Source of the DNA: Selaginella moellendorffii | Taxonomy: Eukaryota; Plantae; Lycopodiophyta | Length of the DNA: 64,000 bases | NCBI RefSeq assembly: GCF_000143415.4 | Contig: NW_003314310.1 | Coordinates: 1,296,611-1,360,610 of the forward strand | Direction: 5' to 3' | Shown here: positions 878-64,000 of the stretch, one piece after another | Layout: each line of letters starts with the position of its first letter | Position numbering within the stretch: position 1 is the stretch's first letter | Notes under the pieces: model-generated | The model's input: only the letters and a program-made list of their open reading frames with translations | Told to the model about the DNA's origin: nothing | The model's database searches: none | Made by a program: the position numbers and the translations under genes

Positions 878-878
878 C

Positions 879-886
879 TAGGGTTT
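879..886 (+). promoter_or_regulatory. Telo-box (TAGGGTTT) upstream of HEN2 start
   Basis: Exact reverse complement of AAACCCTA in the 35-bp gap; telo-boxes are typical of plant RNA-processing and translation genes. Confidence 0.45.
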
Positions 887-912
887 TGTGCGAGAGCTTT
901 AGGTTACGGAGG

Positions 913-8476: not shown

Positions 8477-8742
8477 AGGGATCTCTGCTGAACTAAAACT
8501 ATGCTTTGTATATATATAATTTAGTGTTTGTGTGTGTCATTTTCAGCCGCCTCTCTCTTCATTGTGTGTTCACTGGCACTGCAAACCTTCAGATCTGCCT
8601 GGCCAGCACGCTCTTCGAAGCTTGGACAAGCGGGCGGGAAGAAGATTGTATATTTTAACTAAGTAGTGTGAGGTGAGAGAAAGCGAGGGAGAGAAGGGTG
8701 TTGCTGCGAGTGAGGCGAGGGAGGCGCTACGAGGTTAGCAGA

Positions 8743-18599: not shown

Positions 18600-19999
18600 T
18601 TGAGGTAGTTGCTAGCCCCCCGATGTGTGTTCTCACAACCACATTGAGCTTGCACTTGGTTTAAATGCTCTACGTGTCTAATCCCATACCAATTTTGCAC
18701 TCAATTCAAATGCTCCACATGTTTGGTCCCACTTTAGACATCTAAAGTTATCATCAGTGAAAACTAGAAGAATTCTAGTGTAGTTAAGCTTGTGATTGTG
18801 ACTAGCTGCACAGGTTTGCTACTATGGTTGTAGAACAATAGAGGGCTTTCGATGTCATTGGTTTTGCATTGGCACATTAATTCTTGCCTTGGAACAAGCT
18901 ACCAAACACATTAGTTAATTAGAAATTAATATGAGACCTTCAATCCCCAAGAAAGCTCATGCAAGTGGTCGTGAGTAAGGATAAGCTTGACACCACTAGA
19001 ATATTTTGAGTCTTAAGCAAATGGATGTGCATTGGTGATAAACTAAAATACAATAGAGATAGGGATAAGGGTCGAGTGCTAACTCTTCCCCTTAACTACT
19101 CCTAAATGGTGGCAATCACCATTTCTTCTTGAGTCCTAATTGTCAAGATCATAACCTTGAGTGTCAAGGTCATAATCTTGACTGTCAAGAAAATGCTTGA
19201 ATGCATGGTTAATCTGCTGTACTTCACTCTCCCATGACTAAACGGAGTTTCATCTCAAGGTTCCTATTGCTCCATTGCGTTGGTTGGCTTTGTTGGTGCT
19301 GAATTTCCTGCAAGTTCAACCTTGAATTTTTTGAGTTGCTAATGGAACTCTTCATCATCGCCATTCTCCTTGTTGTGCTCACTTTCATTGTCATCTTCCA
19401 TTACTGTGGGCTGCTTTGCCTTCAGAATGTGAATATCACTGTGAAGCTCCGCATTTTCTTTAGCGAGCTGGTTGTTGATGTGTTGTGTCTTCGCATATAC
19501 TATCCCCTAAAGGATGTATCTAGGGTTAGATTTTGCCCTTTGCCATGGAGTGTTGAGTTTGAGTCCTTGTAGTAACTTTCTTAAGTTTTCTCTTTGTTGG
19601 TGTGGTAGTGTTGGAGAAGCTTGCTTCATGTTGTTCTTTGGGATGTCTGTTGATGAGTCTTGAAAGATTCATTGATCTCTAAGTTTTGTTTTTGGTCAAA
19701 GTTCTTTAAGTTGTTTTTCTTCATGTTGCTTTCTTGAGCTTGATTCTTTAAAGTCTTTCTTATTTTGGATTTTTGAACTTGGAGCTTTGTGTTTCTTGAC
19801 TATGTTGAGTTCTTGAGCTTGAATTTTATAAACCTTGAATGTGTTGAATTCTTAATGTTGAGTCTTCATAGTCTTGATCTCTTGATCTTCATACTTGTAG
19901 TTCTTCTTGATGTTTCGTTCTTGATCTTTAAAGTTGAAATCTTCATTTTTTTCAAAGTCACTGTTGATGATGTTTGAGTCGTACAATTGGTATTTCTTG

Positions 20000-23990: not shown

Positions 23991-24438
23991 TGTGAGACAC
24001 AAAATCCCTAGGCCCCAAAGTGGAGCTGAAAAGGTGCCATGTGGTAGTGGCCAAAGTGAAAGCCAAACGAGCGTAACACGTTTGGACTAAAAGCTCCGAC
24101 TTGAAAAGTTGAGAGTGGGAGTGAAACTCCCAACAAAGTGCTCGAGGAACAAGCATGAAGCGAGCAATAGAGTGAGTCTCTAGAAAAGGGACACAGGAGG
24201 ACCAATACATGACACATGAAAGAGTCCGAGATGGAATCCAAGATGGAGTCCGAGATGGACCCGAGATGGACCGAGATGAACTCGAGATGGAGTCCGAGAT
24301 GGACCTGAGATGGAGTCCAAGATGGGCCCGAGATAGAGTTTGAGATGGACCCGAGGAGTCTGAGATGGAGTCTGAGATGGACCCAAGATGGAGTCTGAGA
24401 TGAAGTCCGAGTTGGAACTGAGACCAAGACCGAGACCA

Positions 24439-24472
<34 letters not shown>

Positions 24473-30400: not shown

Positions 30401-32773
30401 GAAAGGGTCACAAAGTTGAGCAATGGATAGAGCCCTTAGCAAAGAATGCTAAAGAAATTTACTAGGGGTGAGCACCTTCTGGATTTGGTAAAGTGGAGCC
30501 TTTGCTATAGAACCGAAAGAATACCTCAAGGATGGAAGTAGTGAGCCTATGTTACTTGGTGCAACAATCAATGGATAAGAGTAAGAGACTAGTGGCCAAG
30601 TTTGGGCCATGGGATTCATTGGAAGGAATTCAGATAGCAAAGTTAGCTAAGGAACACTAATGTGTTAAATGCTAACGGATTGTGGGAAAGGAAGTGTATT
30701 TTCAAGGATGGATTCCCAAGTGCTCTAATTTGGCGAAGTAAAAGTTCCAAGTGAAGGAGTGGCAAAGTAGCTAAATGATAGGGTCATGGACAACCCTAGC
30801 ACGAATTATGATAATTGGGACGTAATGCCAAAGGTGGCACAAAATAGAAAAGAGGATGATGGTGCCCTCAAGTAGAGAACTTTCTAGTATGGGGAAGTGG
30901 AGTTGCACAAAATGTGCAAAGTAAGGTGTCGAAGACACCTAGGAAATTGATTCCGAGAAGTCAAAATTAAAGGTTCCAAAGTGCTAAGGTTATATTGATG
31001 GAAACTAAGACTATTCGTGAATGAGTAGTGGGAATGAGATAGGGAAGGTGTCTCTAATAGGTTTAGTAAGAACTAAACCAATAAAAAAAAAGAACCACCA
31101 TAATTGGTCAAATGAGTTTCTAATTTGGAAAGACTATGCTCCTTAGAGGATGGGCAAGGCATGGTGAGCCTTCAGTGTCAAACCATTGATGAATATTGGC
31201 GAGATGCCAAAGATGGAAAGGGTAATATATGTTGATATTACTTTATAAAATAGTTTATCATTCGATGAGGACATCAAACTTTGTCTATAGGTGGTGGAGT
31301 TGTGAGACACAAAATCCCTAGGCCCCAAAGTGGAGCCGAAAGGGTGCCACATGGTAGTGGTCAAGCAAAAGCCAAACGAGCATAACACATTTGGACTAAA
31401 AGCTCCAACTTGAAAAGTCGAGAGCGGGAGTGAAATTCCCAAAAAAGCGCTTGAGGAACAAGCACGAAGTGAGCAATAGAGTGAGTCTCTAAAAAAGGGA
31501 CACAAGAGGACCAACACATAACACGTGGAAGAGTCCGAGATCGAGTCCAAGATGGAGTCCGAGATAGAATCCAAGATAGACTCGAGATGGAGTCCGAGAT
31601 GGACCTCAGATGGAGTCCGAGATGGACCCAAGATGGAGTCCGAGATGGATCCGAGATGGAGTTCGAGATGGAGTCTAAGTCGGAGCCGAGACCGAGACCG
31701 AGTCTGAGTCTGAGTCCAAGTTCGAGTCTGAGTCCAAGTCCGAGTCCGAGTCCGAGTCCAAGTCCGAATACTAATACAGGCTGTTGGGTGAAAGCCTAAA
31801 GCGATTGTTCCCCAGGGGGGGGGGAGCTGCAAGGGGTTCCAAAAGTATAGTAGAGAGAGTGTGGGGGTTGGAGCCTAGTGGAGCCAGTTTGGCCCATGAA
31901 GGCTATACCCAGCTATTGGGTGATAGGATGACCACTGGGAAGTCCTAGACTAGAGTGAATACAAACCGACAAGCGAGGTAGCTTGGTGAAGTGTTCAAGA
32001 GCCGGCTCTAGTTTCCCCGGGAGATCAAATGGTCGATGCTCCCAGTCCAAGTGTGGGTGGCACTACCTACTTGGATACCTAGCATGGCTGAATGGAACCT
32101 TGCTTTAAGCCTATGGCTAGAGCACCCAAAGGTGGAAGGTGGGGAGAGTACCCACAAGGCTCGCGTAAAGCTATGGTTTTCTGAAATGTTGTCCCAAAGT
32201 CCCAGACTATGAAAAGGAAGAGGAGCAGCCCTCTGGTGTAGAGACCAAGGATATGATCATGTGAGGAGGAAGTCCCAGAGGACCGTTGGACTTAGTGGTC
32301 AGGCCTATAGGCTTTGATCCAGTGGTAGTGTTGGTGAACACGGCTAGGAACAGAAAGAGACTTAGTGGGGACCAGAAAAGGGATATTGGGGAAGGCTATT
32401 CCCCATGCCTGCGGGCATCTTAAGGATACAAAGGAGTGGATTTGGGATGATCATTCATGGATGGATGGCATAGTCTTTGAGAGACGGGATGGTGATGTAG
32501 GTGGTGTTAGACCATTGGTGTGATCAAGGTGAAGGGGCATAGCCTTAGCGTAACAAGACGACATGTTAGTGGTACCTTGGGGTGTCAGTCTTGGGATTAG
32601 ACATGTGGACCACTTGAACCAAGTGCAAAGGTTGAGTGGTATAGATGCCATTCTCGGGGATAGCAAGCCCCAAGTCCTGAGTTGGACTTATGGAGGTTGT
32701 GAATAGAACTCCTCCAAGTGGTTAGAGGTGTGGTTAAGTGACTAAAGTAGAATGGAAAAATTAGTCATTTCTA
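23991..32773 (+). mobile_element. Family-C non-autonomous LTR element (C-i) inserted in the 5' LTR of C-o
   Basis: LTRs 23991-25663 and 31301-32773; PPT AGGTGGTGGAGT; TSD ATGTT/GTGTT; internal region colinear with that of C-o. Confidence 0.8.
27482..29068 (+). mobile_element. Family-C solo LTR inside C-i
   Basis: TGTGAGACAC...GTCGCTTACA, no adjacent PBS or PPT; flanks CTAGA/TTATG do not form a TSD. Confidence 0.8.
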
Positions 32774-35700
32774 GTGTTGTGACACATGGAAGTGTCAAAA
32801 ACGAGTCTAAAAAGGAGTTCAAGAAGGAGTCCAATATAGACCCTAGATGGACCTAATATGAACTCGAGATAGAGCCTGAGATGGACCTAAGATGGAGTTC
32901 AAAATAGAGTCTGAGATGGATCTGAGATGGAGTTTGAGATTGACCTAAAATGGAGTCCAAGATGGACCTGAGATGGAGTCCAAGGATGGACCCAAGATGG
33001 ACCCAAGATGGAGTCCGAGATCGAGACCGAGACCGAGACCAAAATTGAGATTGAGACCAAGAACGAGCCCGAGTCCGAGTCTGAGAATAGGTTTAAGACC
33101 AAGTTCAAGTCTAAGTCCAAGTCCAAGTTTAAGTCCGAGGGTCAAAGCCCAAAGCAATCATCTCCCAGACCCTAGGGGGTTTAATGAGCTCCAAAAGTAT
33201 AGTAGGGGGGGAAGACTCCAGTGGAGCCAGTTTGGCCAAGAAAGGCTAGTGTGACCAAGGAAGGCTATATCGATGTGTTGGTGATGATATAACCATTAAG
33301 GAGTCTAAGGCTAAAGTGAATATGGACAGACAAGTGGGGTAGTTTTAGTGAAGTGTTCAAGAGCCAACTCTAGCTCCCCCAGGAGATTGAATGGTTGATG
33401 ATCCCAATCCAAGTGTGGGTGGCACTACCTACTTAGATACCTAGTGTGGCTCATTGGAACCTCGCTCTAGCCACATGGCTAGGGCACTTAAGGGTAGAAG
33501 GTGGGGAGAGTATCCACGAGGCTCGCTTAGGGCTATAGTGTTTTGAAATGTCATCCCAAAGTCCCGGATTGTGGAAAGGAGGAAAAATAGTCCTCTTGTG
33601 TAGTGACTAAGGATATGGTCTCATGATAAGGAAGTCTTAGAGGTCAATAGGATTTAGTGGTCAAGCCTTTAGGCCTTGACCCAATGGTAGTGTTGGCAAG
33701 CATGGCCGTGAATATGGATTTGGTAGGAATTAAAGAAGAAATATTGGGGAATGATGTTCCTCATATCTTTAAGCATCCTAAGGGTGCTAAAATGTGGTTA
33801 AGGGATGACCACTTATGGATGGATAACTCAGTATTTGAGAGATGGGATGTTGATGTAGGTGGTCTTGGACTACTGATGTAACAAGAGTGAATAGGCATGG
33901 CTTTAGCATAATGTGCTAATATGTCAGTAGTACCTTCAGGTTTCAATCATGGGATCGAACATATGGAACACTTGGACCAATTGCAAAGGCTGAGTGGCAT
34001 AGATGCCATTCATAGGCCTAACAAATCCCCAAGTCTGGAATAGGATATATGGAGGTTGTGAGTGAGACTCCTCCAAGTGATTAGAAGTATGGTAAGTGAC
34101 TAAAGTAGAATGGAAAATTTAGTCACTAACAATTTGGTATCAGAACTATTCCTTCATCTAACTTTTAGTGGTAATCAAGTATATCACCACTTGTATTAGC
34201 ATCAAAAGGTCCCAAGAGTGAGTCTATCTTTAAGGAATAGCATGTCAAAAGGGCATGACTCTCCACCTTAGTTCGTACGTGAATATGTAGGCAATATGGT
34301 GGATACAAGGGGGCCAATAAGGGGATGACTTTGAAATCTTGGGAATAATATAAAGCTTTAATCATAAAGTTGAAAATGTGATCCAAATGAGTATTTGACT
34401 TAGCAAATTGGCTAATGTGGTTGTGGTAAAAAACTATAGTTGGGATCACGGGAAGGATGAAGACTTTGAGACAATAAAGGAGTCATAAGATTTTCCTTAT
34501 ATAGTTAAAGATGGTACTTATGAATTTGAAACGAGAATTAATGACTATAGAAGGTCAAATATGGAAAGGATATAGGTCCTTGAAATGGTAGTTGGGGCTA
34601 CCTCTAATAAATGTTGGAACAACTTAAAGGTTAGGGGTGTACTTAGAGGGTGAGTCAGTATTCTCCTCATATGGACAGGTAGTCCTAAGAGGCAAAAGTA
34701 GCTCATATGGAATAAAGAATAATCAAGTGTCAAGATAACACTTGCAAATATGGTCCTTGTGAGTAGGATATGTATACAAAAAGTGGTATTTTAGCGAGCT
34801 AACATTTCAAAAATAGGATCTTAAGGGTCATCAGATTAGTAAAAGTCTAAAAAGTTAGATGACTCAAATGAAGTTAAGGAATAATACTAATGTATTTGTG
34901 GAAACTTTTGGACTAAAGTGTGTTATACCCTACGAAGGATAGGGAGGATCATAAGATCCAAGTATGAGAATAGTGGGTATCTCATTGATAGCAAAATATG
35001 CCATACTAAAGTCGTGGGAAATGTTTTCCTGAAAGAAAGCAAATTTGGTGTAGAGTTGTATGTGAATATTATGGTGCAGTGCTAATTGATAATTGGCATG
35101 AAAAACGAGGGTAGGCTCGTAGAGTCAATGGTGTGGAGACATTAAATATGCCAAAGTGTGATGCCTTGAGGTCAAGTTAGCTGGTTCATAAGAACCCCTT
35201 GCCAAAAAAATCCCAATGAAAATGGGATTAGTATAGCCTAAGCTAGAAGATATGTGATTTGAATGTAGTGACCTAAATAATAATGAAGGTGTGGAAGCAT
35301 TAGTAATGAGTATAGGACTTGACAACTATGAAATAACTAAGCAAAAAATACAACATAATTGATTGGATTGGTAGAAGTTAACTTCCCAAGACTTCTTATT
35401 AAGATAAGGAGGTTAGATATAACCCTTGGGGGGATAAAATATTTATATTATGATATAGTGCGTCAATGTCATAAAAAGAAATACATATTGTCAAAGAAGG
35501 CTATCATTGAAACATCTAAACACTTTAAAACACTAAGAAGTGGTGTTTGGTATTATGAGGGCATTAGATAAAGCCCAAGGGACTAAATCCCTAGTGAATA
35601 ATAGATAGAAGATGTTATTCAACGTCCAAGATTGTAGAGATGAGAAAAGTTCATCTATCCAAATTGGACAACGCCAAAAACGATTTTGGCAAAGCTAGTG

Positions 35701-36207
35701 ATGGGCATATAAAGACCCATAAGTAGCAACATTAATCCTGATATGTGGGATTACAAAGTGAGTATATCCAGATTGAAGAACCACTCTTTAGGCTATCGAG
35801 TAAGTTCATCTTTAAAAATGCTTGCTAATGCATGGTAAAAAGTGCAAAACTATCCTCCTATCCTAGAGAAGAATAACCAAAGGAAACATGTGAGGCAAAA
35901 AACAAGTAGTAAAGGGATAGGATTAAACTATGGAAAGCGAAGGGTATAGCCAAGGGTAGTTATGTAAGTTCGTAGTGAAAAATCAAGTAGATGCTTGAAG
36001 ATGTGTTGCTACTGGCAACCATGATACTATAGAGAGTCTAAGGTATGGAATTGTCTATATTAAACCATATAACAATTAAAAAGCTTATGAAAGGAGAGGC
36101 CTTAGCAAGTTAAGGAATAAAATCCTTTCAATGTTCCCAAACACAATTTTATGTAGGTTGATACCTAGAAAGACAAGTGTAAATGATTCATAGGATTACG
36201 CAAAATT

Positions 36208-38520
36208 TACAAGAAACCAACTCTCCGAGGTGTCGAAGGCTAAAGGATCCTCGAAAGCACGATCAAAATGATAAAGAGTTCATCAGATGAGATTGAGTCC
36301 AAGATCAAGTTCAAGACCACCTCTAAGACTGAATTCGAGACCAAGTCCGACATTGAGTTTGAGACAGACTTCGAGACCGAGTTCGAGACCGAGTTTGAAA
36401 TCTGATATTGGATCCGAGACCGAGTCTGAGATCGAGTCTGAGATAGAGTCTGAGGTTGGGTCCAAGATCGAGTCTAAGATCGAGTCTGAGATTGAGTCCG
36501 AAATCAAGTTTGAGATCGAGTCCGAACTCAAGTCCGAGATTAAGTGCGAGACCGAGTCTGAACACTAATACAGGTCGTGGGATGAAAACCCAAAGTGTGT
36601 GTTTCCCCAAGGGGGGGCGGGGGTTCCAAAAGTATAATAGGGATATGGAAGTCTAGGAACTAGTCTTGAAGAAACTCTCTAGTGTTGCTTCCAAACTGAC
36701 TTGAGGTTGAGGCTGGGGCCAAGGGGCCTTGAGTGGGAGTGAGCATGGACTTGGGTGGTGCCGGAGGGGCCACCCAAGGAAGTGCTCAAAGGCAGCTCCC
36801 ATGTAAGGAACCAACTCGCCGAAGTGTTGTAGGCTAAAAGAGCCCCGAAACCAAAATGATAAAGAGTTCATCGAATGGGACCAAGTCTAAGATCGAGTCC
36901 AAGACCGACTCTAAGACCGAGCTCGAAATAGAGTCCGGAATCGAGTCCGAGACCGACTCGGAGACCAAGTTCGAGACTGAGTTCGAGACCGAGTTTGAGA
37001 CTGAGTTCGAGACGGAGTCTGAGATCCGAAATCGGGTCCGAGACCGAGTCCGAGGTCAAGTCCGAGGTCGGGTCCGAGATTGGGTCCGAGATCAAGTCCG
37101 AGATCGAGTCCGAGACTGAATCCGAAGTCGGATCCGAGATCGAGTCCGAGATCGAGCCAGAGACTAAGTCCGAGTACTAATATGGGTCAAGGGGTGAAAG
37201 CCCAAAGCATGCGTCTCCCAAGGGGCAGGGGGGGGCTGCAGGGGGTTCCAAAAGTATAGTAGGGATAGTGAGGTCCAGGAGCCAGTCTTGAAGGAACTCT
37301 CCAGTAGTGCTTCCAAACTGACTTGAGGTTGAGACTGGGGCCGAGGGGCCTTGGGTGGGAGTGAGCATGGGCATGGGTGGTGTCGGAGGGGCCACCCAGG
37401 GAAGTGTTAAAGAGCAGCTCCCACTCCCAAAAGGGAAACCGACTGCGGTGCTCCTAGCTCAGGTGGAGTGGTGCCCCACTTGAGTACCTTGTGGCTCATT
37501 GGTCCTCGCCCTTCCTAGGGGCTTGGGCCTTCCCTTCGATATGGAAGTGGGGGGGGGTAGAGGTACCCATACGAGGCTGTTAGGCCACGGTGTTTCGCCC
37601 CGACGTCCCGAAGCAAGTGCTGCACCCAAGGCTTGGGATTTAGAGGGTCCCATGATCAAGTCTTGTTGTACTAAGGGGTGTTAGGAACCTGGAGGCTTGG
37701 TGTGCTTGGCTGCTTGTGCCTGTGGGGAGTGTAGCTGAACCTTAAGTTCAGTCTAACCCGGGGAGGGGGATTGGGAGAGATTTGGGAATCCGTATATGGA
37801 TGGCTAACACTTCGTTGCTTGTGTAGTGAGTAGCTGAAACCAAGTAGGACCAAGTAGGAGCTGGTACAATAGGCGAGAACCTTGGCAAGAGAACTTAGCA
37901 CAAGCCAAGGCAGTGTTGGTCGGATAGACGAGGTAAGCTGGCAAATTGGAAAGGAAAAATTTGTGGCTTACATCCCACTCCCAGAATGAAAATTGACTGC
38001 AGTGCTCCTGGCTCATGTAGAGTGGTGCCCCACTTGAGTACCTTATGGCTCATTAGTCCTCGCCTTTTCTAGGGGCTTGGGCCTTCCCTTTGGGATGGAA
38101 GTGGGGGACTAGGGGTACCCATATTGGGCCGTTAGGCCACAGTGTTTCCCCCCCACATCCCAAAACAAATGATGCACCTAAGGCTTAGGATTTAGAGGGT
38201 TCCATAATTAAGTCTTGTTATACCAAAGGATGTTAGGTACCTGGAGGCTTGGTGTGCTTGGCTGTTTGTGCCAGTGGGGAGTGTAGCCAAACCTTAAGTC
38301 TAGTCTAACCCAGGGAGGGGGATTGGGAGAGATTTGGGAATCCATGGATGGATGGCTTACGCTTTGTTGCTCGTGCAATGAGTAGCTGAAACCAAGTAAG
38401 ACCAAGAGCTAGTACAATATGCGGGAACCTTGGCAAGGGAACTTAGTTAATGCTAAGGTAATATTGGTCGGATAGACGAGGTAAGTTGGCAAATTGGAAA
38501 GGAAAAATTTGTGGCTTACA
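36208..38520 (+). mobile_element. Older family-E solo LTR (interrupted)
   Basis: Homologous to the reverse complement of 57889-59018; ends GTGGCTTACA; TSD AAATT/AAATC. Confidence 0.75.
36802..37972 (+). mobile_element. Younger family-E solo LTR nested in the older E solo LTR
   Basis: TGTAAGGAACC...GTGGCTTACA with perfect TCCCA TSD. Confidence 0.88.
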
Positions 38521-39439
38521 AAATCAAAGTGGCGTAACAAAACCATGATCTTGAAGCTTGCCATGAGGCGAGGCTATCAAGGTTAGAGGATTATTTCTCG
38601 AGTGTTTAAAGGGATGGCTTTAAATGAAAGTTAATAATTAAAGACTTTCATACTTATGAATAATACTATGTTACACTGGTCGGGTGACTTGCTAAGTGAG
38701 ATTGGCAAGTCGAGGGAACAAAGACTCTAATTGAAGGTGTTGACTTCAAAAGGGGAGGTTTATGGGGCTAAGCTGGTGATGGTTTGGAATATAAGGACAC
38801 TCATTTTTCAGTGGTTATGGACTCTCAATATGGAGGCTAGCTTGGGCACACCACCAAGCAAGGGATGTCATGAAATCATGATGCACAGTTAGATTATTTA
38901 GTGTACGAGCTCAGCATATCTAACTTGAACATTTGGTGCAAGTGACACTAAGGACGTGATGAATGAGATGGGGACACTTAGTCTCAATTGCTATGGACCC
39001 TTGGCCAAAAGGGCTGGCTTGGGAGCACTACCAAGTGTGGGGATGCCCCTAGGTGTAAGCAATCAAAGGGAACGATTTGAAAGATGATTCAAGGTTAAAT
39101 GTCCTTGGGTTTAAATAGTATTGGGTAGGAAGTCTAAATATAGGAGTTTATATTTAGTATTAGAGTGGTCTTGGGTCCAACTCTGTTGGTTGGCTAGGGG
39201 AATCACACCATATGTTGATTGACATTTAACTGGTCTAGTTTGCTCTAGTTGGGTTTGACCTAAAGGGTAGGGTGTCAAGAGAGCGGGGCTCTCCTAAGAG
39301 CTATGGATCTCAGCTTCTATTCACGAGAGTGTGAACTTGCAGGGAAGTGTGGTGGATTATAAACAACCAAAGAAAATGACTCGAGGTCTGATACTTCAAG
39401 ATACACACTTTTGGTTTGAATAGTATTGGGCTGGGTGAC

Positions 39440-42400
39440 TATCGCGAATGTGACTTCGGGTATCGAAAGTTACCTGTCGGTGAGTGCTTACGAACACTCT
39501 TTCTTTACTGCCATGATAGCAGGAGGTCGGTATTGCTGGTTCCCTTTATCAGCCCCTCTTGTTCATGTGTTAATAAATTAGGCTTAGCACTTGTACTTGG
39601 CCAGATGGACATAAGGTAGGAACTCCTATGTGTTTCTAGCTGAGCATACTCGGCCTGGCTCTTAGTTCTCTTTTGTTCTATCTTGCACTAGCTTGACAAG
39701 AACCCTCACGTATTGAGGTTCCTCAATATCACTGGATGATAGCTTACCGTGTCTGCCAAACACCTTTGCTATCATGCCCTTTGTGTTAGTCTCATTTCGG
39801 TCCCAAATGTTATTTATGGAAAATGTCTAGATTTGCTTATTTGGCATATCTATGGATTGTAGAGATTGGTCTGAACATAATGGTATTCATCCCGTGTCCA
39901 AATTTGCAATCTAGTGCCATACCATATTTAATAAGTTTCAAGCTTATCCTAGAGACTAACTCCTGATACTAAGGGAGGCTTGGGGTGAAAGCCCAAAGTG
40001 TGTGTTCCTCAAGGGGGGGGGGGGGCTATGGGGGGTTCTAAATGTATAATAGGGATAGTGGGTAGGTCAGGCATGGCTGACCAACCTGAGGCATAGTCTA
40101 GCTCCTGCTTGCATTCCTGTCCTTGTTCTACGTCCGACTTGGGTCTAAGCCCAAGTTCCATTCCATGCTAGCTGGTGGAGTACCCATATCATTGTGTTAG
40201 GCCACCAGTATGCCAAAATAATGCCAAACTCCATTTAGCTTCGTTTTGCGTGCTGGTCTTGGCATTAGGATGCTGGATACTTGTAGCGCACGTGGTTTTG
40301 ACCCTTTATCCTATGGTGATTTACCATAGGATAACACCACGAAGCGGAACCTAAACCCTCTTTGTGCCACGTGACGGATGCCACGTGTCACATGCCACAT
40401 GTCCATGCCACGTGTCCATAAGAACCCGAGGTTCAGGGCCTTGGGCCACTGAACAAAGGAATGGTGCCAAACTCCCAAGCATGGAGCCAAGGAGTGACGG
40501 AACCGAACCACGGAGCAACTCCCAAGCATGAAGCCCAAGGAGCGAAGGGACAGGAGCTCGGAGCGACTTGGAACAGTCCTAGAGTAACCAGCATCCTAAT
40601 GCCAGGACCAGCACGCAAAACGGAGCCAAACGGAGTCTAGCGCTATTTTGGCATACCAGTGGCCTAACGCGAGGATATGGGTACTCCACCAACTAGCATG
40701 GAATGGAACTTGGGCTTAGACCCAAGCTGAATGTAGAACAAGGACAGGCACGCAAGCAGGAGCTAGACTATGCCTCAGGTTGGTCAGCCATGCCCGACCT
40801 ACCCACTATCCCTACTATACATTTGGAACCCCCCACAGCCCCCCCCCCCTTGAGGAACACACGCTTTGGGCTTTCACCCCAAGCCTCCCTTAGTATCAGG
40901 AGTTAGTCTCTGGGACAAGCTCGAAACTTACTAAATATGGAATGTCCCTAGATTGCGAATTTGGACATGGGACGAACACCATTGTGTTCAGGACGTTCTC
41001 TACATTCCATAGATATGCCAAATGAGCAAATCTGGACACTTTCCATAAATAACATTTGGGACCGAAATGAGACTAACACAAAGGGCATGATAGCGAGGGT
41101 GTTTGGCAGACACGGTAAGCTATCATGTAGCGATATTGAGGGACCAATCTCAATACGCGAGGGTTCTTGTCACTAGCAAGTGCAAGACAAAACGAGACGG
41201 GAACTCCTTACCGGGCTAAGTATGCTTAGCTAATAACACGTAGGAATTCCGTCCTTATGCTCGTCCAGTCTAAGTACACTCGAAATGCCCAGTTAACTCC
41301 ACTAGCACAAGAGGGACTGATAAAGGGTCCAGCAATACCGACCTCCTGCCATCGTGGCAGTAAGGTAAGAGTGTCCGTAAGGACTAGTCGACAGGTAACT
41401 TTCGATACCTGAAGTCACATGCGCGACACTCTCCCCCCCTAGGGAAGATCGACGTCCTCGTCGATGCACACTCGAGTCTAGAATACCACCAAGGAAACAA
41501 CTCCAGAAAAAGTTCATGGTATTCACACTATGTGAGAAATGCACCAACTTAAATGAGTTAGGGGTAACCTCTTTGTCTAACGCGGATGCGCTTTCAGCTC
41601 AGACACCTTCCGGCCGTCACCGACAAGGAAATGACCAACGGAGTCAGCCACCCCTGCTGCTTTGGGAGTCACCCAGCTTACAAAAGTGTGATATGCCCTG
41701 CCCGCAGAGACATAGAGAGAGAAGCCAGAGGCCCCAACCCTCTTGAGCAAAGAAACCAAACCCGTCGGTAAGGTTTAGATAGACTACTATAAACAGGCAG
41801 TTAGAGTTGTTTACACGGTCACGCCCTTTGAACGGAATAAGGAACATCGACAGAGAGGCGGGTTATGTGACCAGTCGACTAGAGATTTCAACATGCACAC
41901 GAAGTGCCGAAGCCAGTCTGCCTATACTGGCCCAAACTCAAAGATCAATAGATGGACAATATCAAAGTTATAGACAATGATATCTTAGAGACTTAATTAT
42001 CAGTGAATAAATCTTATATTAGAACACAAAAGTATTCCAAGTAAGTTATCATTCGATAAACTAGTATTAAAGGATAGGAACCACCAAGATCATCTTTTTT
42101 TGGGAAACATAGGAATCACCATCCAACAAAAATTCAATAGCTAGGATATCATCAAGTAAACTCAATGATGAAACTTAAGCATTGAAGATTGCAGATAGAG
42201 TGCTAAACAACTTACAAAAGATAACTCAAAGAACACAAAGTATCATCGACTGGCAAGCAAAATGCTCGCAAATGTATCACCCGAAGGAAATAACATCCCA
42301 ATCTATCAGAACTAACTTGAGCAACAATCAACAGAATAGAATGAATGTGGCAAGACCAACAAACACTCGTTCATGCCAACTATCACACTAGCCAATCTGA

Positions 42401-47502: not shown

Positions 47503-50064
47503 ATGACCTCCCGAGAAGTCTACATTTAGCAGTTTACATTGGGGTTTAACTTAAATGTCTGGAAAACCTAGTACCTATTGGCAAAATTATTAATATATCA
47601 AAGTGAAGATCACTAAATGATGTTGTGGCTAAGTAAGGACAAGGTCTTGTTTGGTTAAGGAATGAGATTCCTAGTTTAATGTGATGATTTGAACTGTTGA
47701 TAATGATGTGGCTTGGTCAAGGTGACCAAGTGGGAAGGACACCTAAAGGGAAATCAATTGTGTTAATGTAATGGTATAGTGAATCCAAGAAAGTAATCTT
47801 TAGGAAAGACTCATGGGAGGGTTGCAAAGTTAGGACGTGAATAGAACTTATAATAAATAATGCTCAAGAGACTTACTAGGGGTGAACACCCCTTAGACTT
47901 AGCAAAGTAGAACTTTTGTTATGGAGCTAAAAAGATACTTCAAGAATGGAAGTAGTGATCCTATGTTGTTTGGTGCAACAATCAAAGGATAGAAACAAAA
48001 GATTAATGGCCAAGATTGGGCCATAGAAGTCATTGGAAGAAATCCAAATGACAAGTTAGGCAAGAAACACCCACAAGGTGGATACTAATGGATTGTGGGA
48101 AAGGAAATATATTTCTAAGAAGTGATTCCAAAATGCTTTACTTAGCAAAGGGTAAAAGCTTCAAAAGAGATGGAGTGATAAGGTAGCCAAATGATAGGGC
48201 TATAAATAACCCTAATATGAATTATAGATAAATGGAATTTAATCCCAAGGGTGGCATGAAATAAAAGAGGAGATGATGGTATCCTTTAATAAGGAACTTC
48301 CTAAGATGGGGAAGTGGGGTTTGTATAACCTGTGTAATCCAAGGTGTTGGACACACCTAAGAAATTGACTCAAGATGTCAATATTAAAGTTCCAAAGTGT
48401 GATAGTTATGCTCGTAAGGCCGAGGCTACTCCTGAATGAGTAATCAAATTGAAATAAAGAAAGTGTCTCTAACAAATTTAGCATGAACTAAACAAAGAAA
48501 AGGGAAAGGACCACTATAAGTGGTCTAATGAATCTCTAAGTTAGAGAGGCTATGCTCGTTAAAGGATGGGCAAGGCATAGTGAGTTTTCGATGTCGAACC
48601 ATTGATGAATATTGGTTGGGTGTTAAGGATGAAAAATGGTAATCCATAATGAAGTTGCTTTGTAAAATAGTTCATCATTTAACAAGAACATAGAGGTGGT
48701 GGAGTTGTGAGACACAAATCCCTAAGACCCAAAGTGGAGCAGAAATGGTGTCACATAGTAGTGGTCAAAGTGGAAGTCCAATAGGCTTAACATGTTTGGA
48801 CCAAAGGCTTCGACTTAAAAAGTTGAGAGTGGGAGTGAAACTTTGAATGAAATGCTCTAGGGATGAGTACGAAGCAATTGGTGAATCAGTTTCTAAAAAG
48901 GGATATAAGAAGAATTGACATGTGGCAAGTGTCATGACACATAAAAGTGTTTGGAACGAGTATGAAAAGGAGTCAAATATAGACCCGAGATGGAGTTTGA
49001 GATGGAGTCAGAGATGGACCCAAGATAAAGTCCGAAATGGACCCGAGATGGAGTCCAAGATGGAGCCGAGATGGAGTCTGAAATGGACCCGAGATGGAGT
49101 CTGAAATGGACCCGAGATGGAGTCTGAAATGGACCCGAGATGGAGTCTGAAATGGACCCGAGATGGAGTCTGAGGTTGAGTCTAAAATGGACTTGAGATG
49201 GAGTCCAAGGTTGAGATCGAGGCCGAGACTAAGACCAAGACCGAGACCAAGTTCGAGTCCGAGTCCAAGTCCAAGACCAAGTCTGAGACTATGTTTGAGT
49301 TCAAGTCCGAGTCCAAGTCCATGTTTGAGGGTGAAAGCCCAAAGCAATTGTCTCCCAGACCCTTAAGGGTTTGGTGAGCTCCAAAAGTATAGTAGGGGGG
49401 AGGACTCCAATAGAGTTAGTTTAGCCAGGAAAGGCTCGTGTGACCAAGGAAGGCTATACCTATGTGTTGGGTGATGATATAACCATTGAGGATTCTAAAG
49501 ATAGAGTGAATTCAGACAAATAAATGGGGTAGCTTGATGAAGTGTTCAAGAGCTGGTTCTAGATCCCCCGGGAAATCTGATGGTCAATGCTCCCAATCCA
49601 AATATGAGTGGCACTACCTACTTGGATACCTAGTGTAGCTCATTGGAATCTCACTTTAGCCATATGGCTAGGGCAAAAGGTAGGGAAAGTACTCATAAAA
49701 CTTGCGTAGGGATATGGTGTTTCCAAATGTCATCCCAAATTCCTGGATTGTGGAAAAAAAGAGGAATAGTCCTTTTGTGTAGTGACTAAGAATACAATCA
49801 CATGGTGAGGAAGTCCTAGAGGTTAGTGGGACTTAATGGTTAATCCTTTAAGCCTTCACCCAGTGGTGGTGTTGCAAACACGGCCGTGGATAGAGATTTG
49901 GTGGGAACTGAAGAAGGGATATTGAGAAAGGATGTTCCCCATGTTTTCAAGCATCTTAAGGGTGCTAAAGTGTGGTCAAAGGATGACCACTCATTGATGG
50001 ATGGCCCAGTATTTGAGAGATGGGATGGTGATGCAAGTGGTCTTGGACTACTGATGTGATAAGG

Positions 50065-54800: not shown

Positions 54801-56584
54801 GTTTTATTGGATTTGTTGTTATTGTCTTTGGTTTGTTGTGTTCTTATTAAGGAAATGTTGTATAGTTATAGAATTGTGTGGTGTAGACTAACACGATCTT
54901 GTATGTTGGTATTTGTATTGCTACATTGTACTCAGTTAAATAAAGTTGATCAGTTGTCAACAACTGCTTGCCAACTTTGAGATCAAACAAGAGTGCATAC
55001 TATAGTTACTCTTTTTATGAGTTTTTGTTGTGTTAAATTGTTGTAAAGTAATTGTGGCCTACCTCTAATTATGTTGTATAAATTTTTACATATCCTCACT
55101 ATGAGCTTCCGCGATCTCCAATAGATGGTGATATTTGAAAAGTTTGAGCTGAGTAGTGGTTGTATTCGAAGTATTGTTATCCTCAAGATTGTTGTTGAAA
55201 TAGATTTTCAAAATTCTTGATTCTTGTATTCTTCTATCTTCAATTGCAGTCCATGCATTGAGATATGGATTCCAATAGACTTCTTTAATTAATAGTTGTA
55301 GTGTTTGGGGGTGTATCCAGTGTTCTTTTGCCCAAGTTCCTCTTCATATTTCTTCATCTTGTAATTTGTATATGGCTGTGTCGATGGGTGTAACATATCC
55401 ATTAATATCATCTAATAATTTCTTTGATTTGTTATAGTAGAAAGGTTGGAAGTTTTTCTTAGATTCGTTGTGTGTTGTTTTTTTTTTTCTTTTTGGCAAA
55501 TTTATTTTTGATCTAAGTAGATGTTGGAAATCCAAAAAAGTTCAAGGATGATTCTCCACATGTAGAGTTTGGTTTTGTCTTGATGTTCTACAAACTTCTT
55601 CTAGTGGATGATGACTCTAGAGTGGATTGGTGTATGTGTTTCTTTTCTTTGTTGATTGTAGATTTTGTTGAAGATTCTTTCTTGAATCTTGAGAGGTAGA
55701 TTCTTGAGTGCCCTCGTGAGTCTTCTTTTTGTATCCTCGATGATGACTAAAGTAGGATTTTAAACTCATGATGTTGAGATTTCGGTCATGATTTGGATTG
55801 GAGGTAGATAGCATTGAGGTCATGAAACTACAAGATTTGTTTATTGCTTCATTTGCTATCATTGACTTTCTTGACTTTTAAGAAAATATTTGTAAGAGTC
55901 AGGAAAAGTTTCTTGAATCCCACATACCCATCATAATCACCATTGAAAACTAGAAGAATATTGGTGTAGTTAGGCTTGCGATTGTGACTAGCTGTACCAG
56001 TCTACTGCTGTGGCTGCAGAATGAAAGATGTTGTATTGTTGGTGATTTCTCGAAGTTAGATTTCAAGTCTTTGAGTCGATTCTTGATTTTGAATTCTTCA
56101 AGATTGTGGAAGAACTTAATTTTGTTAGTGAGGCAATTTAATTGGTCTTTATTCTCTTGTTTGGTCCTGATGAAGCAGTGATGTTTGCAAGTGGGGCTTT
56201 TGATGTTATTGATCTTGCATTGGCACAATAATTCTTGCCGTGGAACAAGCTATCAAACACATGAGTTAATTAGAAACTAATCTAAGACCTTCAATCCCCA
56301 AGAAGGCTCATGCAAGCGGTCATAAGTAAGAATAGGCTTCACATCACTAGAATACTCTGAATCTTGAGCAAATGGATGTGCATTGGTGATAGACAAGAGT
56401 ATAATAGAGATAAGGATAGGGATCGAGTGCTAACTCTCCCCATTAACTACTCCTACATGGTGGCAACTACCACTTCTTCTTGAGTTCTGACTATTTAGAT
56501 CATAACCTTGAGTGTCAAAGTTGTAATCTCGATTATCAAGAAAATGCTCAAATGTATGATTAATCTGTTGTGCTTCAACCAGGG

Positions 56585-57026: not shown

Positions 57027-59803
57027 CAGTGTAAGAACCTCATATGCTAAGGTTATGTCTGTTCTCAATATCTCATTGGTAGTCTAAAACCAACCGTATT
57101 ATAATCCTATTTTTTCAAGATTAAGCTATCCATCCATAAGTAGTTATCCTATAACCACACTTTAGCATTTTTAGAATGTCCCAAGATATAGGAAATACCT
57201 TTCCCTAATATCCCTTTTTTTATCCCCACCAAGTTCCTCTTTGTCTATAGTAATGCTTATCAACACCACCACTAGTCCAGGGCATAAAGGCCTATCCAAC
57301 CTCTGGAACTTCTTCACCACATAACCATACTCTTGGTCACTAAGTAAGAGGACCTACTTCCATAGTTCAGGACTTTGGGACAACATTTCAATACACCATA
57401 GCCCAATGCGAGTGTTATGGGTACTAACCCCACCTTCCACCACTAGGGTGCCTTAGCAATGTGGCTAGAGCAAGGTTCCAATGAGCCTTACATGGTATTT
57501 AAGTAGGTAATGCCACCCACACTTGGATTGAGAGTATTGACTATTTAAACTCCCGAGGAAGCTAGAGCTAGCTTTTGAACACTTTACCAAATTACCCCAT
57601 TTATCTTTTCGTGTTCACTCTAGCCTTGGACTCCTTAATGGTTATGTCATCACCCACCACATGGGTGTAGCCTTCCTTAGTCACATTGGCCTTTCTTGGC
57701 CAAACTAGTTCCACTAAAACCCTCCCCCCTACTATACCATAGAGACTCACCAAACCCCCCAGGGTTTAGGAGATGATTGCTTTGGGCTTTCACCTTCAGA
57801 TTCAAACTCAGACTTAAACCTGGTTTCGATCTTGGTCTCAGTGTTGATTTAAGTCTTTAACTCCTTCTTGGACTCCATCTCAAGCTCCTGTAAGCCACAA
57901 ATTTTTCCTTTCCAATTTGCCAGCTTACCTCATCTATCCGTCCAACTCTGCCTTGGCTTTTGCTAAATTCTCTTGCCAAAGTTCCCGCCTATGGTACCAA
58001 CTCCTACTTGGTCTTACTTGGTTTCAGCTACTCACTACACAAGCAATGGAGTGTTAGCCATCCATCCACGGATTCCCAAATCTCTCCCAATCCCCCTCCC
58101 CGGGTTAGACTGGACTTAAGGTTCGGCTACACTCCCCACAAGCACAAGCAGCCAAGCACACCAAGCTTCCAGGTTCCTAACATCCCTTGGTACCACAAGA
58201 TTTGATCATGGGACCCTCTAAATCCCAAGTCTTGGGTGCAACACTTGCTTCGGGACGCCAGGGCGAAACACCATGGCCTAACGGCCCGGTATGGGTACCT
58301 CTACCTCCCCCCCACTTCCATCCCGAAGGGAAGGTCCAAGCCCCTAGGAAGGGCGAGGACCAATGAGCCACATGGTACTCAAGTGGGGCACCACTCCACA
58401 TGAGCCAAGAGCACCGCAGTTAGTTTCCCTTTCGGGAGTGGGAGCTGCTCTTGAGCACTTCCTTGGATGGCCCCTCCGGCACCAACCACGTCCATGCTCA
58501 CTCCCACCCAAGGCCCCTCAGTCCCAGTCCCAACCTCAAGTCAGTTTGGAAGCCCCACTGGAGAGTTCTTTCAAAACTGGTTCCTGGACCTCACTATCCC
58601 TACTATACTTTTGGAACCCCCTGCCCCCCTAGGAGACGCACGCTTTGGGCTTTCACCCCTTGACCCATATTAGTACTCGAACTCAGTCTCTGGCTCGATC
58701 TTAGACTCGATCTCGGATCCGACTTCGGATTCGGTCTCAGACTCGATCTCGGACTCGATCTCAGACCCAATCTCGGACCTGACCTCGGACTCGACCCCGG
58801 ACTCGGTCTCAGACCCAATTTCGGATCTCGGACTCTGTCTCGAACTCGGTCTCCGAGTCGGCCTTGGACTCGATTCCGGACTCTATCTCGAACTCAGTCT
58901 CCGAGTCGGTCTTGGACTCGATCTTAGACTCGGTCCCATCCAATGAACTCTTTATCATTTTGGTCATGCTTTCGGGGATCTTTTAGCCTATGACACCTTG
59001 AGGAGTTGGTTCTTTACAACTCCACCACCGATAGAAGAAGTTCGATGCCCACATTGAACATCTCTTTTTTATCCTATGACTTGTTGACCATGTCTCCGAG
59101 GGCATCCCCCCACTTAGCGGTGTGCCTAAGTTAGCCTCCCTAACCAAGAGCCCATGACAACGGAATATAGGTGTCCCTATACTCCTCACCTCACCACGCC
59201 CTAGTATAGGGTCGGGACTTGAACCCAGCCTTGCTTTACTAGGGGGTTGGGACTCAAACCCAACCTCCGTAGAATACATCTACGGATTTGACATCCCCGC
59301 AGAGAGTCGGGCGTAGTTCCCTACACCTGGTCGACCTAGCTAACCCATGCTAATTAGCTTACCTTCGGCGTGCCTTCAGGTCCCAACATATGCCATTGCT
59401 CAACTTCTCAAATTGATACTTTTAATTGAATTTTGCATAAGTACATAGAGTTCTGCCTTGCAGAAATTCCTCCACTAGATCTCGCGCGTTCACTAGGTTC
59501 TCCTCTAGTTCCTATGTTGCTTCGCAGTGTGGAAATCCTTTCCACTTCACATAGAACTCTCTCACCTTGCATCCTTGTCGCTTGCTCTTGCGTGCATTGA
59601 GGATGGCCTCGACTTCGTATTCCTCTTCCCCTTGGATAACCTCAGGTAAAGGTCTCACTTGGTCTTTGCGAAGCGGATCCTCAAAATACGGCTTGAGTAA
59701 GTTCACGTGGAACACGGGATGCATCTTCCCCATCTCTTGAGGAAGTGGGAGACGGTAAGCCACTTTACCGATTCGAGCCTCAATCTCGTAAGGCCCCGCG
59801 AAC

Positions 59804-59855
59804 CTACTTAAGGAACTCAAGATCAATTCATTTACAGGAATACATGCATTTTTAC
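59804..59855 (-). other. Putative 52-nt spliceosomal intron before the GPY motif and chromodomain
   Basis: AG|GTAAAA...TTCCTTAAGTAG|G; removal restores KLTQRFAGPYEI. Confidence 0.75.
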
Positions 59856-60273
59856 CTTTGGGTCAACTTCCGGCTGATCCCACTTGGTAGCCTGAGGTCC
59901 TTGGTGTTCAGCCACACCTTCTCCCCAGCTTGGAACTCTACATCTCGACGCTTCTTTTTCGCGTACTTAGTTTGCCTTTGTTGAGCCCGTTCCAAGGAAT
60001 CCCTCACTAAATTCCAAATGTTGAGTCTTTCCGCCGTGAATGCCTCCACTGTGGGTAACTCTCCATGATACTCGGCCACACCAAGTTCCACAGGACCTTT
60101 AATAGCTCACCCATTGATGACTTCCCATGGACTCACCCCGATGCTCGAATGTGGTGAGTTGTTATAACACATTTCCGCAAGTCCCAAATGACTTACCCAA
60201 TCGGTCTGGTCTCCCGAGACATAGCATTGCAAATAATCCTCCAGCTGCCTATTCACCCTTTCCGTTTGTCCGT

Positions 60274-60320
60274 CTGTCAAGAAGTGTTAGTGCCATCAAA
60301 CTTGACTTAATACCCATTAC
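60274..60320 (-). other. Putative 47-nt spliceosomal intron in the integrase core
   Basis: AG|GTAATG...CACTAAC ACTTCTTGACAG|AC; removal restores AYHLQTDGQTERVN. Confidence 0.75.
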
Positions 60321-61756
60321 CTGTCTGCAGGTGATAGGCTATACTGAATTTCAACTTGGTGCGATACTGTTCTAGGAGTGTCTTCAAGAACCTACTGGTG
60401 AAGATCTTATCTCGATCTGAGATAATCTCTTCCAGCCTTCCCCGCACTCGAACCACTTGTTCGAAGAACAGCTTCACCACCCCTTCCGCATCCACTTCTG
60501 TTGTGGTGGGTATGAAATGTGCCATCTTCGAAAATCAATCCACCACCACAAATATCGCATCGAACCCCTCGCTTGAGGGAAGTCCCGTGATGAAGTCCAT
60601 CGTAAGACATTTCCACGGACGATCTAGAAATGGGATGCTTTGTAACAAGCCCCCACTAGCCTTAGTCACGGCTTTAACCTGTTGACATGTTGGACATGTC
60701 TTTACATAGTCTTGGACATCCTTAGCCATATCTGGCCAGTGGTACTTCCTCTTGAGTAAGCCCATTGTCTTGGGCACTCTGCCGTGTCTCACAAGAGGTC
60801 TGTCATGACACTCTTCTAAGGCTACCTTCCTTAGTTCCCCTTCTGGAACATACACCATCGTTTGCTTGTAATATATGAGTCCATTGCATTCCACATAGCT
60901 CGTTTTCTCTTCCGTTGGCAACTCACCTCTCTGGTGAGCTTCCCGTGCCTCTAGATTCCACAGCAACACTTCTTGTGCTAGACCATCATTCTCGTAGGCG
61001 GTCCGTACATCATCCCAAAAGGTTGCTGTTGCACTAGATATTGCCAATTTCAAACTCGCTTTTCGATTTAGCGCATCTGCCACGATGTTGCGCTTCCCAG
61101 GCTTGTATAGAATCGCGCAATCAAACTCGGCCAAAGCATTGGCCCACCGACCTTGTTTTCCCCTCAGGTCGGGCTGTGACAAGAAGTGTTTCGTTGCCAC
61201 ATTGTCCGTGTAAACCTTGAAGTGTCTCCCAAGGTAGTGTCGCCACTCCTTGAGTGCCTTGACCACCGCAAACAATTCCTTCTTATGGGCAGGCCACTTC
61301 CGTTGAGCCATGTCCAACTTCTTCAAGAAGAACGCTACTAGATGGTTGTCTTGCTTCAAAACTGCACCCAACGCAAAGTCTAAAGCATCTGTTTCTACCT
61401 CAAAGTCCTTACCAAAGTCTGGTAACACCAACATGGGAGCCTTCCTCAACTTCCCTTTGAGGTGGATGAATGCCGCCTCGCATTCCACTGTCCATACCAT
61501 CTTTCTTTTTCCCGTTTGGTACGTTAAGGGCAGGGCTACTCTCGAATAGTGTTTGATAAACTTTCGATAGTAGTTGCATAGCCCCATGAATGCCCTTAAC
61601 TCATGTACATTCGATGGTCGCTCCCAATCCTGGATCACTTGGACCTTCTCCGGGTCCACCTTGAGCCCGTCCTGGCCCACCACATGCCCGAGAAACTTTA
61701 CCTCTTGTTGAGCAAAGTTACATTTGCTCTCTTTAGCATACAGTTTGTGTTCCCTT

Positions 61757-62152
61757 AGTTTCTCAAACACCTTCGCCAAGTGTTCGGCATGCTCCTCAAG
61801 CGTCTCGCTATAGATCAGGATGTCGTCGATATAGACGACCACGAAGTGATCTAGATAGGGTACAAATATGTGGTTCATCAGCGCCGAAAGTTTCTCAAAC
61901 ACCTTCGTCAAGTGTTTGGCATGCTCCTCTAACATTTCGCTATAGATCAGGATGTCATCAATATAGACGACCACAAAGTGATCCAGATAGGGTACAAATA
62001 TATGGTTCATCAGTGCCGAAAGTTTCTCAAACACCTTCGTCAAGTGTTTGGCATGCTCCTCTAGCGTTTCGCTATAGATCAGGATGTCGTCAATATAGAC
62101 GACCACAAAGTGATCCAGATAGGGTATAAAAATATGGTTCATCAACGCCGAA
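61757..62152 (-). repeat. 3 x 132-bp in-frame tandem repeat within RT
   Basis: Units start at 61757, 61889 and 62021; each encodes 44 aa including YIDD. Confidence 0.95.
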
Positions 62153-64000
62153 AACGTGGCATTGCATAGCCCGAAGGGCATCACCAGAAACTCAAAGCTC
62201 CCATACCTCGTTCGACAGGTTGTCTTCTCGACATCTTCCTCTGCTACCCTGATCTAGAAGTATCCTGACCTTAGGTCAATCCTCGAGAAGTATTTTGCCT
62301 TTCCCAACCTATCGAACAGGTCCTCAATCCTTGGCAAAGGGTACTTGTTCTTCTTTGTATATTTGTTGAGCAACCGGTAGTCTATGCACATGCGCATAGA
62401 TCCATCTTTCTTTTTCACAAATAGCACCGGTACCCTATATGGCGACTTGCTCAACCTAACATACCCTTTGTCCACCAACTTTTCTAGTTGGCGCTTGAGC
62501 TCCGCAAGTTCTTTTTCGTTCAAACGATAAAAGGGACGAACCACTGCCTCAGCACCCTCGACCAGCTCAATCTTATGTTCTATCAGTCGTGCGGGGGGCA
62601 ACCCCGCCGGTAGCTCCTCTGGCATGATATCCCGAAATTGGTCCAACACCCGTTGGATCACTAAAGGTACTTCTTCCATTCCTGTCTTTTTGTCACTTCT
62701 CACTGAGAGTAAGCACAAAAATGCAGCTTTGGTCCCTTTAGTGAGTTGTCCTCTCATGGACACCAGGTTTAAGCACGAATCTTTGGCCTTACATTGCCCT
62801 ACCTTTAGATCCTAGGCCTCCACCCTGGATCTTCTTCCTTGGGCATTTGCTAATACCACAAAGTTCCTACCTTGTCCATGTAGGGCTACCATAAACCGAT
62901 TGAACCAATCCATCCTGAAGATCTCGTCAAATCTCGCCATGTCCAACACAGTGAAATCCATGTCTACTTTCCAAGTCCCTACTTCGACTCTCACTTGTCG
63001 AAGTACCTCATCGGCGCTTTGGCTACCTTGAACAAACTCTATAGTCCTTGGTTTGCCCAGCTGCTGCACCGTTAGTCCGGCTTGCCGGACTATGTCTGCA
63101 GCCACAAAATTATCCGAAGCACCCGTGTCAATAAGGATCTTAACAAAGCTACCTCCGAGCTTCCTTCGGAGGGCTAGTAGATGTCGCGAACGACTCTCTA
63201 CCAAAGTTGCTCGTGTAATGTGTAACTTTAAGCTAGGGACTGGATCACATACTTCAGTTTGGACTTCACCCGACTTAATGGCCATATTGGCTCTAGCCTT
63301 CTTTAGGTAAGGACATTCCCTCGAAAAGTATCCCGCCTCACCGCAGTTATAGCATATGTTATTTCCCACGTTGCTAAATGACTTGACCTTCTTATCCATG
63401 GGTTTGTCTCTTTTTGCTTGACTCCCCCACGTACTTGCTCGCTGGCCACCGAATTTGCCTTTTCGGAACCCCGAGGACTCATTCTTAGAGAAACTCTTCT
63501 TGAATTTCCCTTTGCTATAAGTTCCCTTTGGTTTGGCCCCTTTGCTAAACGTGGACCCCGACCCCGTCGTGTTCCCCTTTCACAGGTTATCGTTGAAATG
63601 CACCTTGATAGCTGCATCCAACGCTTCTTTGTAATTGGTCAAGTTCCACCGCATCACTTTGCCGCGAGCCCAGGTTTGCAAGCCTGATATGAAGGCATGG
63701 AACGCATCCATATCCCCCATGTCCGTGATAAGTATCCTCTTTGCCATGAACCCATTCACATACTCCTGGATGGTTCCAGTCTGCTTCAGCCTACTCAGCT
63801 CATCTCTTAGATGCAAAGTGGCATTCAGAGGAACGTATGTTGCGTGGATCCTGGCCTTCATCATGTCCCAAGTGGCCACCGGTCCTTCGTTGGCCTCTGT
63901 CGTTCTTCACCAAGATTTGGCATTATCTGCCAAGTATGGTTTTGCACATAGGACCTTCTCCGAGCTCAGTAACCGCAACGCTCGGAAGTAGTCCTCCATA

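Follow-up and report, generated by a model that had tools for sequence, protein, structure and literature searches.

How a retrotransposon family of hundreds of copies can keep two mini-introns inside its integrase is the question raised by the locus described here, since retrotransposition is the textbook route of intron loss. The locus lies on the minus strand at one end of the window (the whole stretch of 64,000 nucleotides of Selaginella moellendorffii DNA that was analysed), and a preliminary description, made from the letters alone, had placed two short GT...AG segments in the integrase frame of an LTR retrotransposon and had built on them a splicing switch that would govern integration and target choice. 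The same locus raises a second question, namely how the unspliced RNA is chosen for packaging when RNA assemblies show the spliced form.

Identity, anatomy and decay of the element

An LTR retrotransposon occupies the minus strand from 57889 to the end of the window (64000) and continues past it, so that its 5' LTR, leader, primer-binding site and target-site duplication fall outside the window. A Pfam profile search, run separately on each piece between stop codons, recovered on this strand, in order, Retrotrans_gag, zf-CCHC, RVP_2, RVT_1, RT_RNaseH, Integrase_H2C2 and rve, then SH3_Tf2-1 and Chromo; by this domain order and the C-terminal chromodomain the element is a Ty3/gypsy chromovirus. 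Its coding region is divided into three exons. The part of exon 1 that lies in the window (60321-64000) encodes gag, protease (PR), reverse transcriptase (RT), RNase H (RH), the integrase (IN) zinc finger and the rve core as far as the residues YHLQT, as assigned by Pfam. Exon 2 (59856-60273) contributes the motif with the catalytic glutamate (D-GQTER), the remaining integrase and the start of an SH3-like domain, and exon 3 (59422-59803) the rest of this SH3-like integrase C-terminal domain, with its GPY motif, and the chromodomain. Exon 3 matches positions 24-63/64 of the SH3_Tf2-1 profile (E 4.8e-15), and the Chromo match (PF00385, E 1.8e-7) follows downstream within the same exon. Beyond the natural stop codon (59422-59424), a 3' untranslated region (59019-59421) leads to the 3' LTR (57889-59018; 1130 bp, with TG...CA ends), which is 87.5% identical to a second LTR copy at 36802-37972.

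The copy in the window is dead, and it documents the structure of the family only. Seven in-frame stops interrupt it: five in exon 1 (first bases 63909, 63582, 62814, 62256 and 60537), one in exon 2 (60107-60109, first base 60109) and one in exon 3 (59512-59514, first base 59514). Within RT, a unit of 132 nt that includes the YIDD motif is present as an in-frame tandem triplication (61757-62153; 3 x 132 nt, the units 92-93% alike, as seen in self-matches and in the translation). Neither the seven stops nor the triplication figures in the preliminary description, and because of them this copy could not express anything useful. Sister copies differ from it at many letters, most of the differences being transitions, and one of them falls inside its last stop; since the sister copies read another letter there, this stop at least, and many of the other differences, are private decay. 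The divergence among the RT units suggests that the triplication is not of very recent origin.

A domesticated host gene was also considered, but is ruled out by the presence of an LTR and of stop codons and by the many copies of the family. No close kin was found in protein libraries: a 549-aa RT-RH-IN open reading frame found no match above 53% identity in them, and for the 83-aa piece of exon 2 none of the top matches listed from a representative protein library, ranked by E value, exceeded 45%, with a few weaker partial matches at 50-60%.

Two GT-AG inserts divide the integrase

A single frame runs from 63999 to 60321 on the minus strand, is shifted at insert 1 (60274-60320, 47 nt, phase 1) and is shifted back at insert 2 (59804-59855, 52 nt, phase 2). 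No further frameshift occurs in the ~4.6 kb of gag-pol, and the coordinates first proposed for the two frame-breaking segments proved exact. With a slash at the exon boundaries, insert 1 reads CAG/GTAATG ... CACTAAC ... ACAG/A and insert 2 reads AAG/GTAAAA ... GTAG/G. The AG/GTAA donors can be read directly, and both inserts are AT-rich as had been stated, with a GC content of 0.38 (insert 1) and 0.31 (insert 2) against 0.48 in the flanking exons. Translation through the inserts ends at stops directly after GNGY and QR, respectively; exact excision of both yields YHLQT-D-GQTER and KLTQ-R-FAGPY and restores the frame, so that this part of the preliminary description also stands. The position of insert 1 is four codons upstream of the integrase catalytic E, the last member of the DD(35)E triad.

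Several features set these segments apart from random indels. Along the sense strand of the 4.6 kb, the hexamer AGGTAA turns up only three times, and at two of these places it marks exactly the frame breaks. Alignment with intron-free chromovirus proteins of other organisms leaves exactly one residue between the products of exon 1 and exon 2, as expected of a split codon, in 11 of 11 homologues. For insert 2, whose neighbourhood is less conserved than that of insert 1 and whose junction was judged only in homologues with an exon 2 alignment that nears the site, the gap between the flanks ranges from -1 to +4 residues in three homologues (P0022, P0034 and P0062).

Host genes in the window provide a yardstick for length. 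An MTR4/HEN2-like RNA helicase (79-4700, plus strand; DEAD, MTR4 beta-barrel and DSHCT domains) carries GT..AG introns of 52, 49, 53 and 56 nt, and an LRR receptor kinase (8698-12071, plus strand) carries one of 49 nt. The match in size with helicase introns, given earlier as 48 and 52 nt, is therefore real, although the shorter of the two measures 49 nt and not 48. The inserts thus have the GT..AG ends, the host-like donor and a length near those of the five host introns (49-56 nt) that characterize GT-AG introns, and the rarity and placement of AGGTAA, the one-residue junction in 11 of 11 homologues and the host-like size together exclude chance as their origin. By eye, insert 1 contains a branch-site-like CACTAAC, located 17 nt ahead of the final base of the insert, the acceptor G; insert 2 offers weak branch-site candidates only (TTGATC and CTTAAG), likewise picked by eye.

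Relation to SM1-Galahad and to intron-free relatives

Among the elements described from Selaginella, SM1-Galahad (Novikova and Smyshlyaev 2012, PMC3350952) was grouped with the Galadriel chromoviruses, and was reported with a consensus of ~7.5 kb, hundreds of copies at ~95% identity and LTRs of 1076/1146 bp. Downstream of its ORF1, which ends within the core integrase, come "two additional short ORFs", and the final one contains a group I chromodomain (PMC3350952). The copy in the window shares with this family the host genus, the gag-PR-RT-RH-IN order, TG..CA LTRs of just over 1 kb (the 1130 bp of the 3' LTR agree with the published lengths) and a high copy number, and the published three-ORF layout is exactly the exon layout found here. 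Through the three-ORF layout, the LTR length and the copy number, all compared with the published description and not with the consensus sequence itself, SM1-Galahad is a well-fitting assignment: a high-copy Ty3/gypsy chromovirus of Selaginella, from a decayed copy of which the integrase-chromodomain stretch described here derives. The published account (PMC3350952) describes three ORFs, and the words intron and splicing are absent from it. The intron reading corrects this three-ORF reading, and both it and the RNA evidence given below are new relative to that account; in the literature searched, we found no prior report of introns in this Selaginella family or in any chromovirus integrase.

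Two relatives are uninterrupted. SM2-Galahad, in the same genome and with the same domain order, has one continuous ORF that includes the chromodomain (PMC3350952). In the window itself, a decayed, AT-rich chromovirus fragment, A2 (22788-23758, minus strand), has an integrase ~50% identical to that of the element and, as was first pointed out in the preliminary description, carries no insert at either site. SM2-Galahad and A2 are both without the inserts, which confines the introns to the SM1 line; they were therefore either gained in that line or lost in SM2-Galahad and A2. A2 also shows a loss of four residues exactly at site 1, where it reads YHPQT-ECVN instead of YHPQTDGQTERVN.

The inserts are kept in DNA and removed in RNA-type contigs

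Contigs and reads from sequencing runs were aligned at 85% likeness to positions 59000-61750, a stretch ended at 61750 so as to avoid the tandem repeat in RT. From DNA run X1, 30,029 contigs aligned, with likeness from 99% to below 90%. Their summed word depth (~0.8-1.0 million) is flat across both inserts, and a skip of 47 or 52 nt is not among the 15 joints listed for this run (joint depth 166-345); with 43 further joints beyond that list, rare intron-free DNA copies may exist. A diverged DNA contig of X1 (record 7, at 86% likeness) runs across intron 1, and a contig of X4 (record 16, 59777-59938), a run labelled as another organism, runs across intron 2. Record 16 differs from the decayed window copy at only 2 positions, and X4, despite its label, may come from the same species or from one very closely related to it.

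Both inserts are missing from contigs of run X15. One of them (record 9, 734 nt) aligns to 59470-59801 and 59854-60255, a 52-nt skip that corresponds to 59804-59855 after a 2-nt slide of the GT (an equivalent GT..AG placement); another (record 10, 194 nt) aligns to 60197-60273 and 60321-60432, and its skip is exactly 60274-60320. The two junctions that had been proposed as a check in RNA, 60321^60273 and 59856^59803, are thus both found in RNA-type contigs, each on a low-depth contig of its own (word depth 7.3 and 3.1). Records 9 and 10 are ~94-95% like the window copy, and since they differ from it by ~5% they derive from sister copies. X15 is a 31-Mb assembly with only 5 contigs on the stretch, at depth 2-7 and with holes; this sparse, low-depth and holey coverage, against ~30,000 contigs in DNA run X1, argues that X15, the only run of its type that was aligned, is RNA rather than genomic DNA, its RNA label being itself a guess. 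None of the 5 contigs of X15 shows an unspliced or a singly spliced form.

A raw RNA run, X21, gave nine reads and no listed joint. By bin-depth arithmetic, one 150-nt read would fit the spliced sequence 60170-60273 plus 60321-60366 (26 + 78 + 46 = 150, the missing 14 + 33 making up the 47 nt of intron 1), and another, by the same arithmetic, seems to extend 19 nt into intron 2.

Both inserts are thus true introns of spliceosomal type that belong to the family as a whole, kept in its genomic copies and excised exactly in RNA-type contigs.

A proposed division of labour between spliced and unspliced RNA, and its alternatives

We regard it as probable, with some confidence, that in the SM1-Galahad family pol is split by two host-type mini-introns in such a way that the spliced RNA gives the integrase and the unspliced RNA gives the new copies. 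Transcripts of the family would divide into two pools. Spliced mRNA would be the sole source of the complete integrase with its chromodomain; unspliced RNA would yield Gag-PR-RT-RH and only an integrase stump without the catalytic E, because that residue is encoded four codons beyond intron 1. As the introns persist in new copies, reverse transcription must start from unspliced RNA; unspliced RNA would accordingly be the only form that is packaged and reverse transcribed, and this exclusive packaging would be what allows the introns to survive retrotransposition. The integrase would be supplied to the particles in trans, in an amount set by host splicing. A stronger form of the proposal, in which the genome RNA is uncoupled from the integrase messenger, every particle receives its integrase in trans and the host spliceosome becomes a compulsory, dosage-setting step of integration, is possible, and we put it forward tentatively, as doubtful. 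The mini-introns may in addition give the element a host-gene-like messenger, with splicing-dependent export and protection from RNA silencing, or they may carry signals that exclude spliced RNA from particles.

Of the readings that compete with this one, the best placed, though improbable, is the switch envisaged in the preliminary description: a splicing-gated choice among three states, in which unspliced RNA would encode a dead integrase, singly spliced RNA an integrase without the targeting module and doubly spliced RNA a full targeting integrase, and which would tune both integration and target choice. Each intron does present an immediate in-frame stop; the two junctions were found on separate X15 contigs, so that independent splicing would be possible; and the intron of Ogre elements is spliced in a subset of transcripts only (PMC6317226). 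Against this stands the position of intron 2, which in homologous proteins corresponds to a site ~27 residues inside the SH3-like domain (P0035, SH3 771-836, site 797/798; P0022, SH3 772-837, site 798/799; P0043, SH3 734-796, site 758/759). Exon 3 begins at position 24 of 64 of SH3_Tf2-1, and a functional, singly spliced "untargeted" integrase is for this reason unlikely: the intermediate product, which had been expected to be a clean integrase lacking GPY motif and chromodomain, would be a broken, truncated fold and not a modular truncation. In X15, the one RNA-type assembly that covers the region, the only forms seen are those from which the intron concerned has been removed, both introns being represented but on separate contigs, with no singly spliced or unspliced contig among the five; and nothing connects the splice state with target choice. 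What survives of the gating claim is that the complete integrase-chromodomain protein can come only from spliced RNA; its extension to a graded switch is unsupported.

It is less probable still, and in our judgement quite unlikely, that the family is a defective, non-autonomous lineage, whose ancestral integrase was broken by the inserts, which borrows the integrase of an intron-free relative such as SM2-Galahad, and in which the observed splicing uses cryptic sites. A lender would be at hand in SM2-Galahad, which is closely related and abundant and has one uninterrupted gag-pol-chromodomain ORF, and the authors of the 2012 survey found no intact SM1 copy (PMC3350952); the intron-free relative A2 lies in the same window. 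The reading requires, however, two independent accidents, each of which produced an AG/GTAA donor, an AG acceptor, a host-like length and base-exact excision, where AGGTAA is found only once elsewhere in the 4.6 kb. Moreover, exons 2 and 3 retain their frame and their domain signatures even in the decayed copy, as expected if the family still translates them.

That the intron-free contigs of X15 are not RNA at all, but DNA of processed retrocopies, is very improbable: X15 is labelled RNA by a guess only, as noted, but its five low-depth, holey contigs in an assembly of 31 Mb contrast with ~30,000 in the DNA run, and no such skip is among the joints listed for X1. We reject the remaining reading, by which the inserts would be private indels acquired by the window copy after its insertion, as having next to no probability, since, clearly decayed as this copy is (seven stops and the RT triplication), the inserts are carried by sister DNA contigs down to 86% likeness and under a second organism label (X4), DNA depth in X1 is flat across them and the same layout of three ORFs is seen in the consensus published for the family (PMC3350952); the inserts are a property of the family.

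Comparison with other elements that use splicing

According to a 2025 review, plant LTR retrotransposons are in general intron-free, with Ogre and EVADE as the exceptions (PMC12786077). In Ogre elements of pea and Medicago, which belong to the Tat/Ogre lineage, an intron lies in the polyprotein frame and is kept in genomic copies, and the downstream part of pol needs splicing for its expression (PMC6317226; PMC12786077). The element in the window resembles them in that its introns also interrupt the polyprotein frame and its downstream domains require splicing; splicing that restores pol is thus a principle with precedent. The two are nevertheless distinct, Ogre being a member of a non-chromovirus lineage and the present element a lycophyte chromovirus with a chromodomain and SH3_Tf2-1, so that it works like Ogre without being one. 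They also differ in what is gated: the Ogre intron controls RT as well, whereas in the SM1-type element RT is made without splicing and only the integrase depends on it, through two introns (47 and 52 nt) that lie inside the integrase, at the catalytic core and in the SH3-like domain. With these differences, Ogre is the closest functional analogue.

Among Ty1/copia elements, host splicing also shapes which proteins are made from BARE1, copia and EVADE (PMC3735527; PMC12786077), and in BARE the RNA that is translated and the RNA that is packaged are known to form separate pools (PMC3735527). In BARE1, copia and EVADE splicing removes pol and leaves a gag-only subgenomic RNA, the unspliced RNA encoding the complete Pol, whereas the unspliced RNA of the SM1-type element lacks a complete integrase.

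Retroviruses and Cer1 of C. elegans translate Gag-Pol from the unspliced genome, and we know of no retrovirus that requires splicing to complete its integrase. The arrangement of retroviral env and accessory genes and of Cer1 (PMC10309623) resembles the one proposed here in that the genome is an unspliced RNA while a spliced RNA serves as messenger, and in that an intron-containing RNA must exit the nucleus.

The SM1-Galahad family offers a natural system in which to study how the RNA of a plant retroelement is partitioned between translation and replication, how introns originate in a mobile element (with a sister family, SM2, that has none) and whether splicing sets integrase dosage. It also carries a warning for annotation, in that pipelines which require a single open frame will score elements of this kind as defective.

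Surroundings of the element

The element is embedded in a nest of other repeats. Two adjacent LTR-like copies, on the opposite strand and 79-87% identical to the LTR of the element, lie at 36215-38520, and they could represent a solo LTR with a partial LTR, or else what is left of a nested element of the same family. Just outside the 3' LTR, the segment 57043-57838 belongs to a different repeat, represented in the window by at least six copies that are ~70-73% alike (for example 33096-33873, 28054-28818 and 49326-50061), and a further segment, 56194-56577, shows 86% likeness to 18843-19226.

The few raw RNA reads of X21 concentrate in the 3' untranslated region of the element, at 59092-59367, with the first mate always on the minus strand. 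The same interval contains two T-arm-like motifs of the form GGGTT(C/T)(A/G)AGTCCC; a tRNA or other Rfam identity for the T-arm-like repeats at 59100-59340 was considered and dropped, there being no match with ARAGORN or Rfam. Elsewhere in the window, positions 24000-40000 show a sustained, strongly positive GC skew of 0.20-0.28 over ~16 kb, with a GC content of 0.35 to 0.50.
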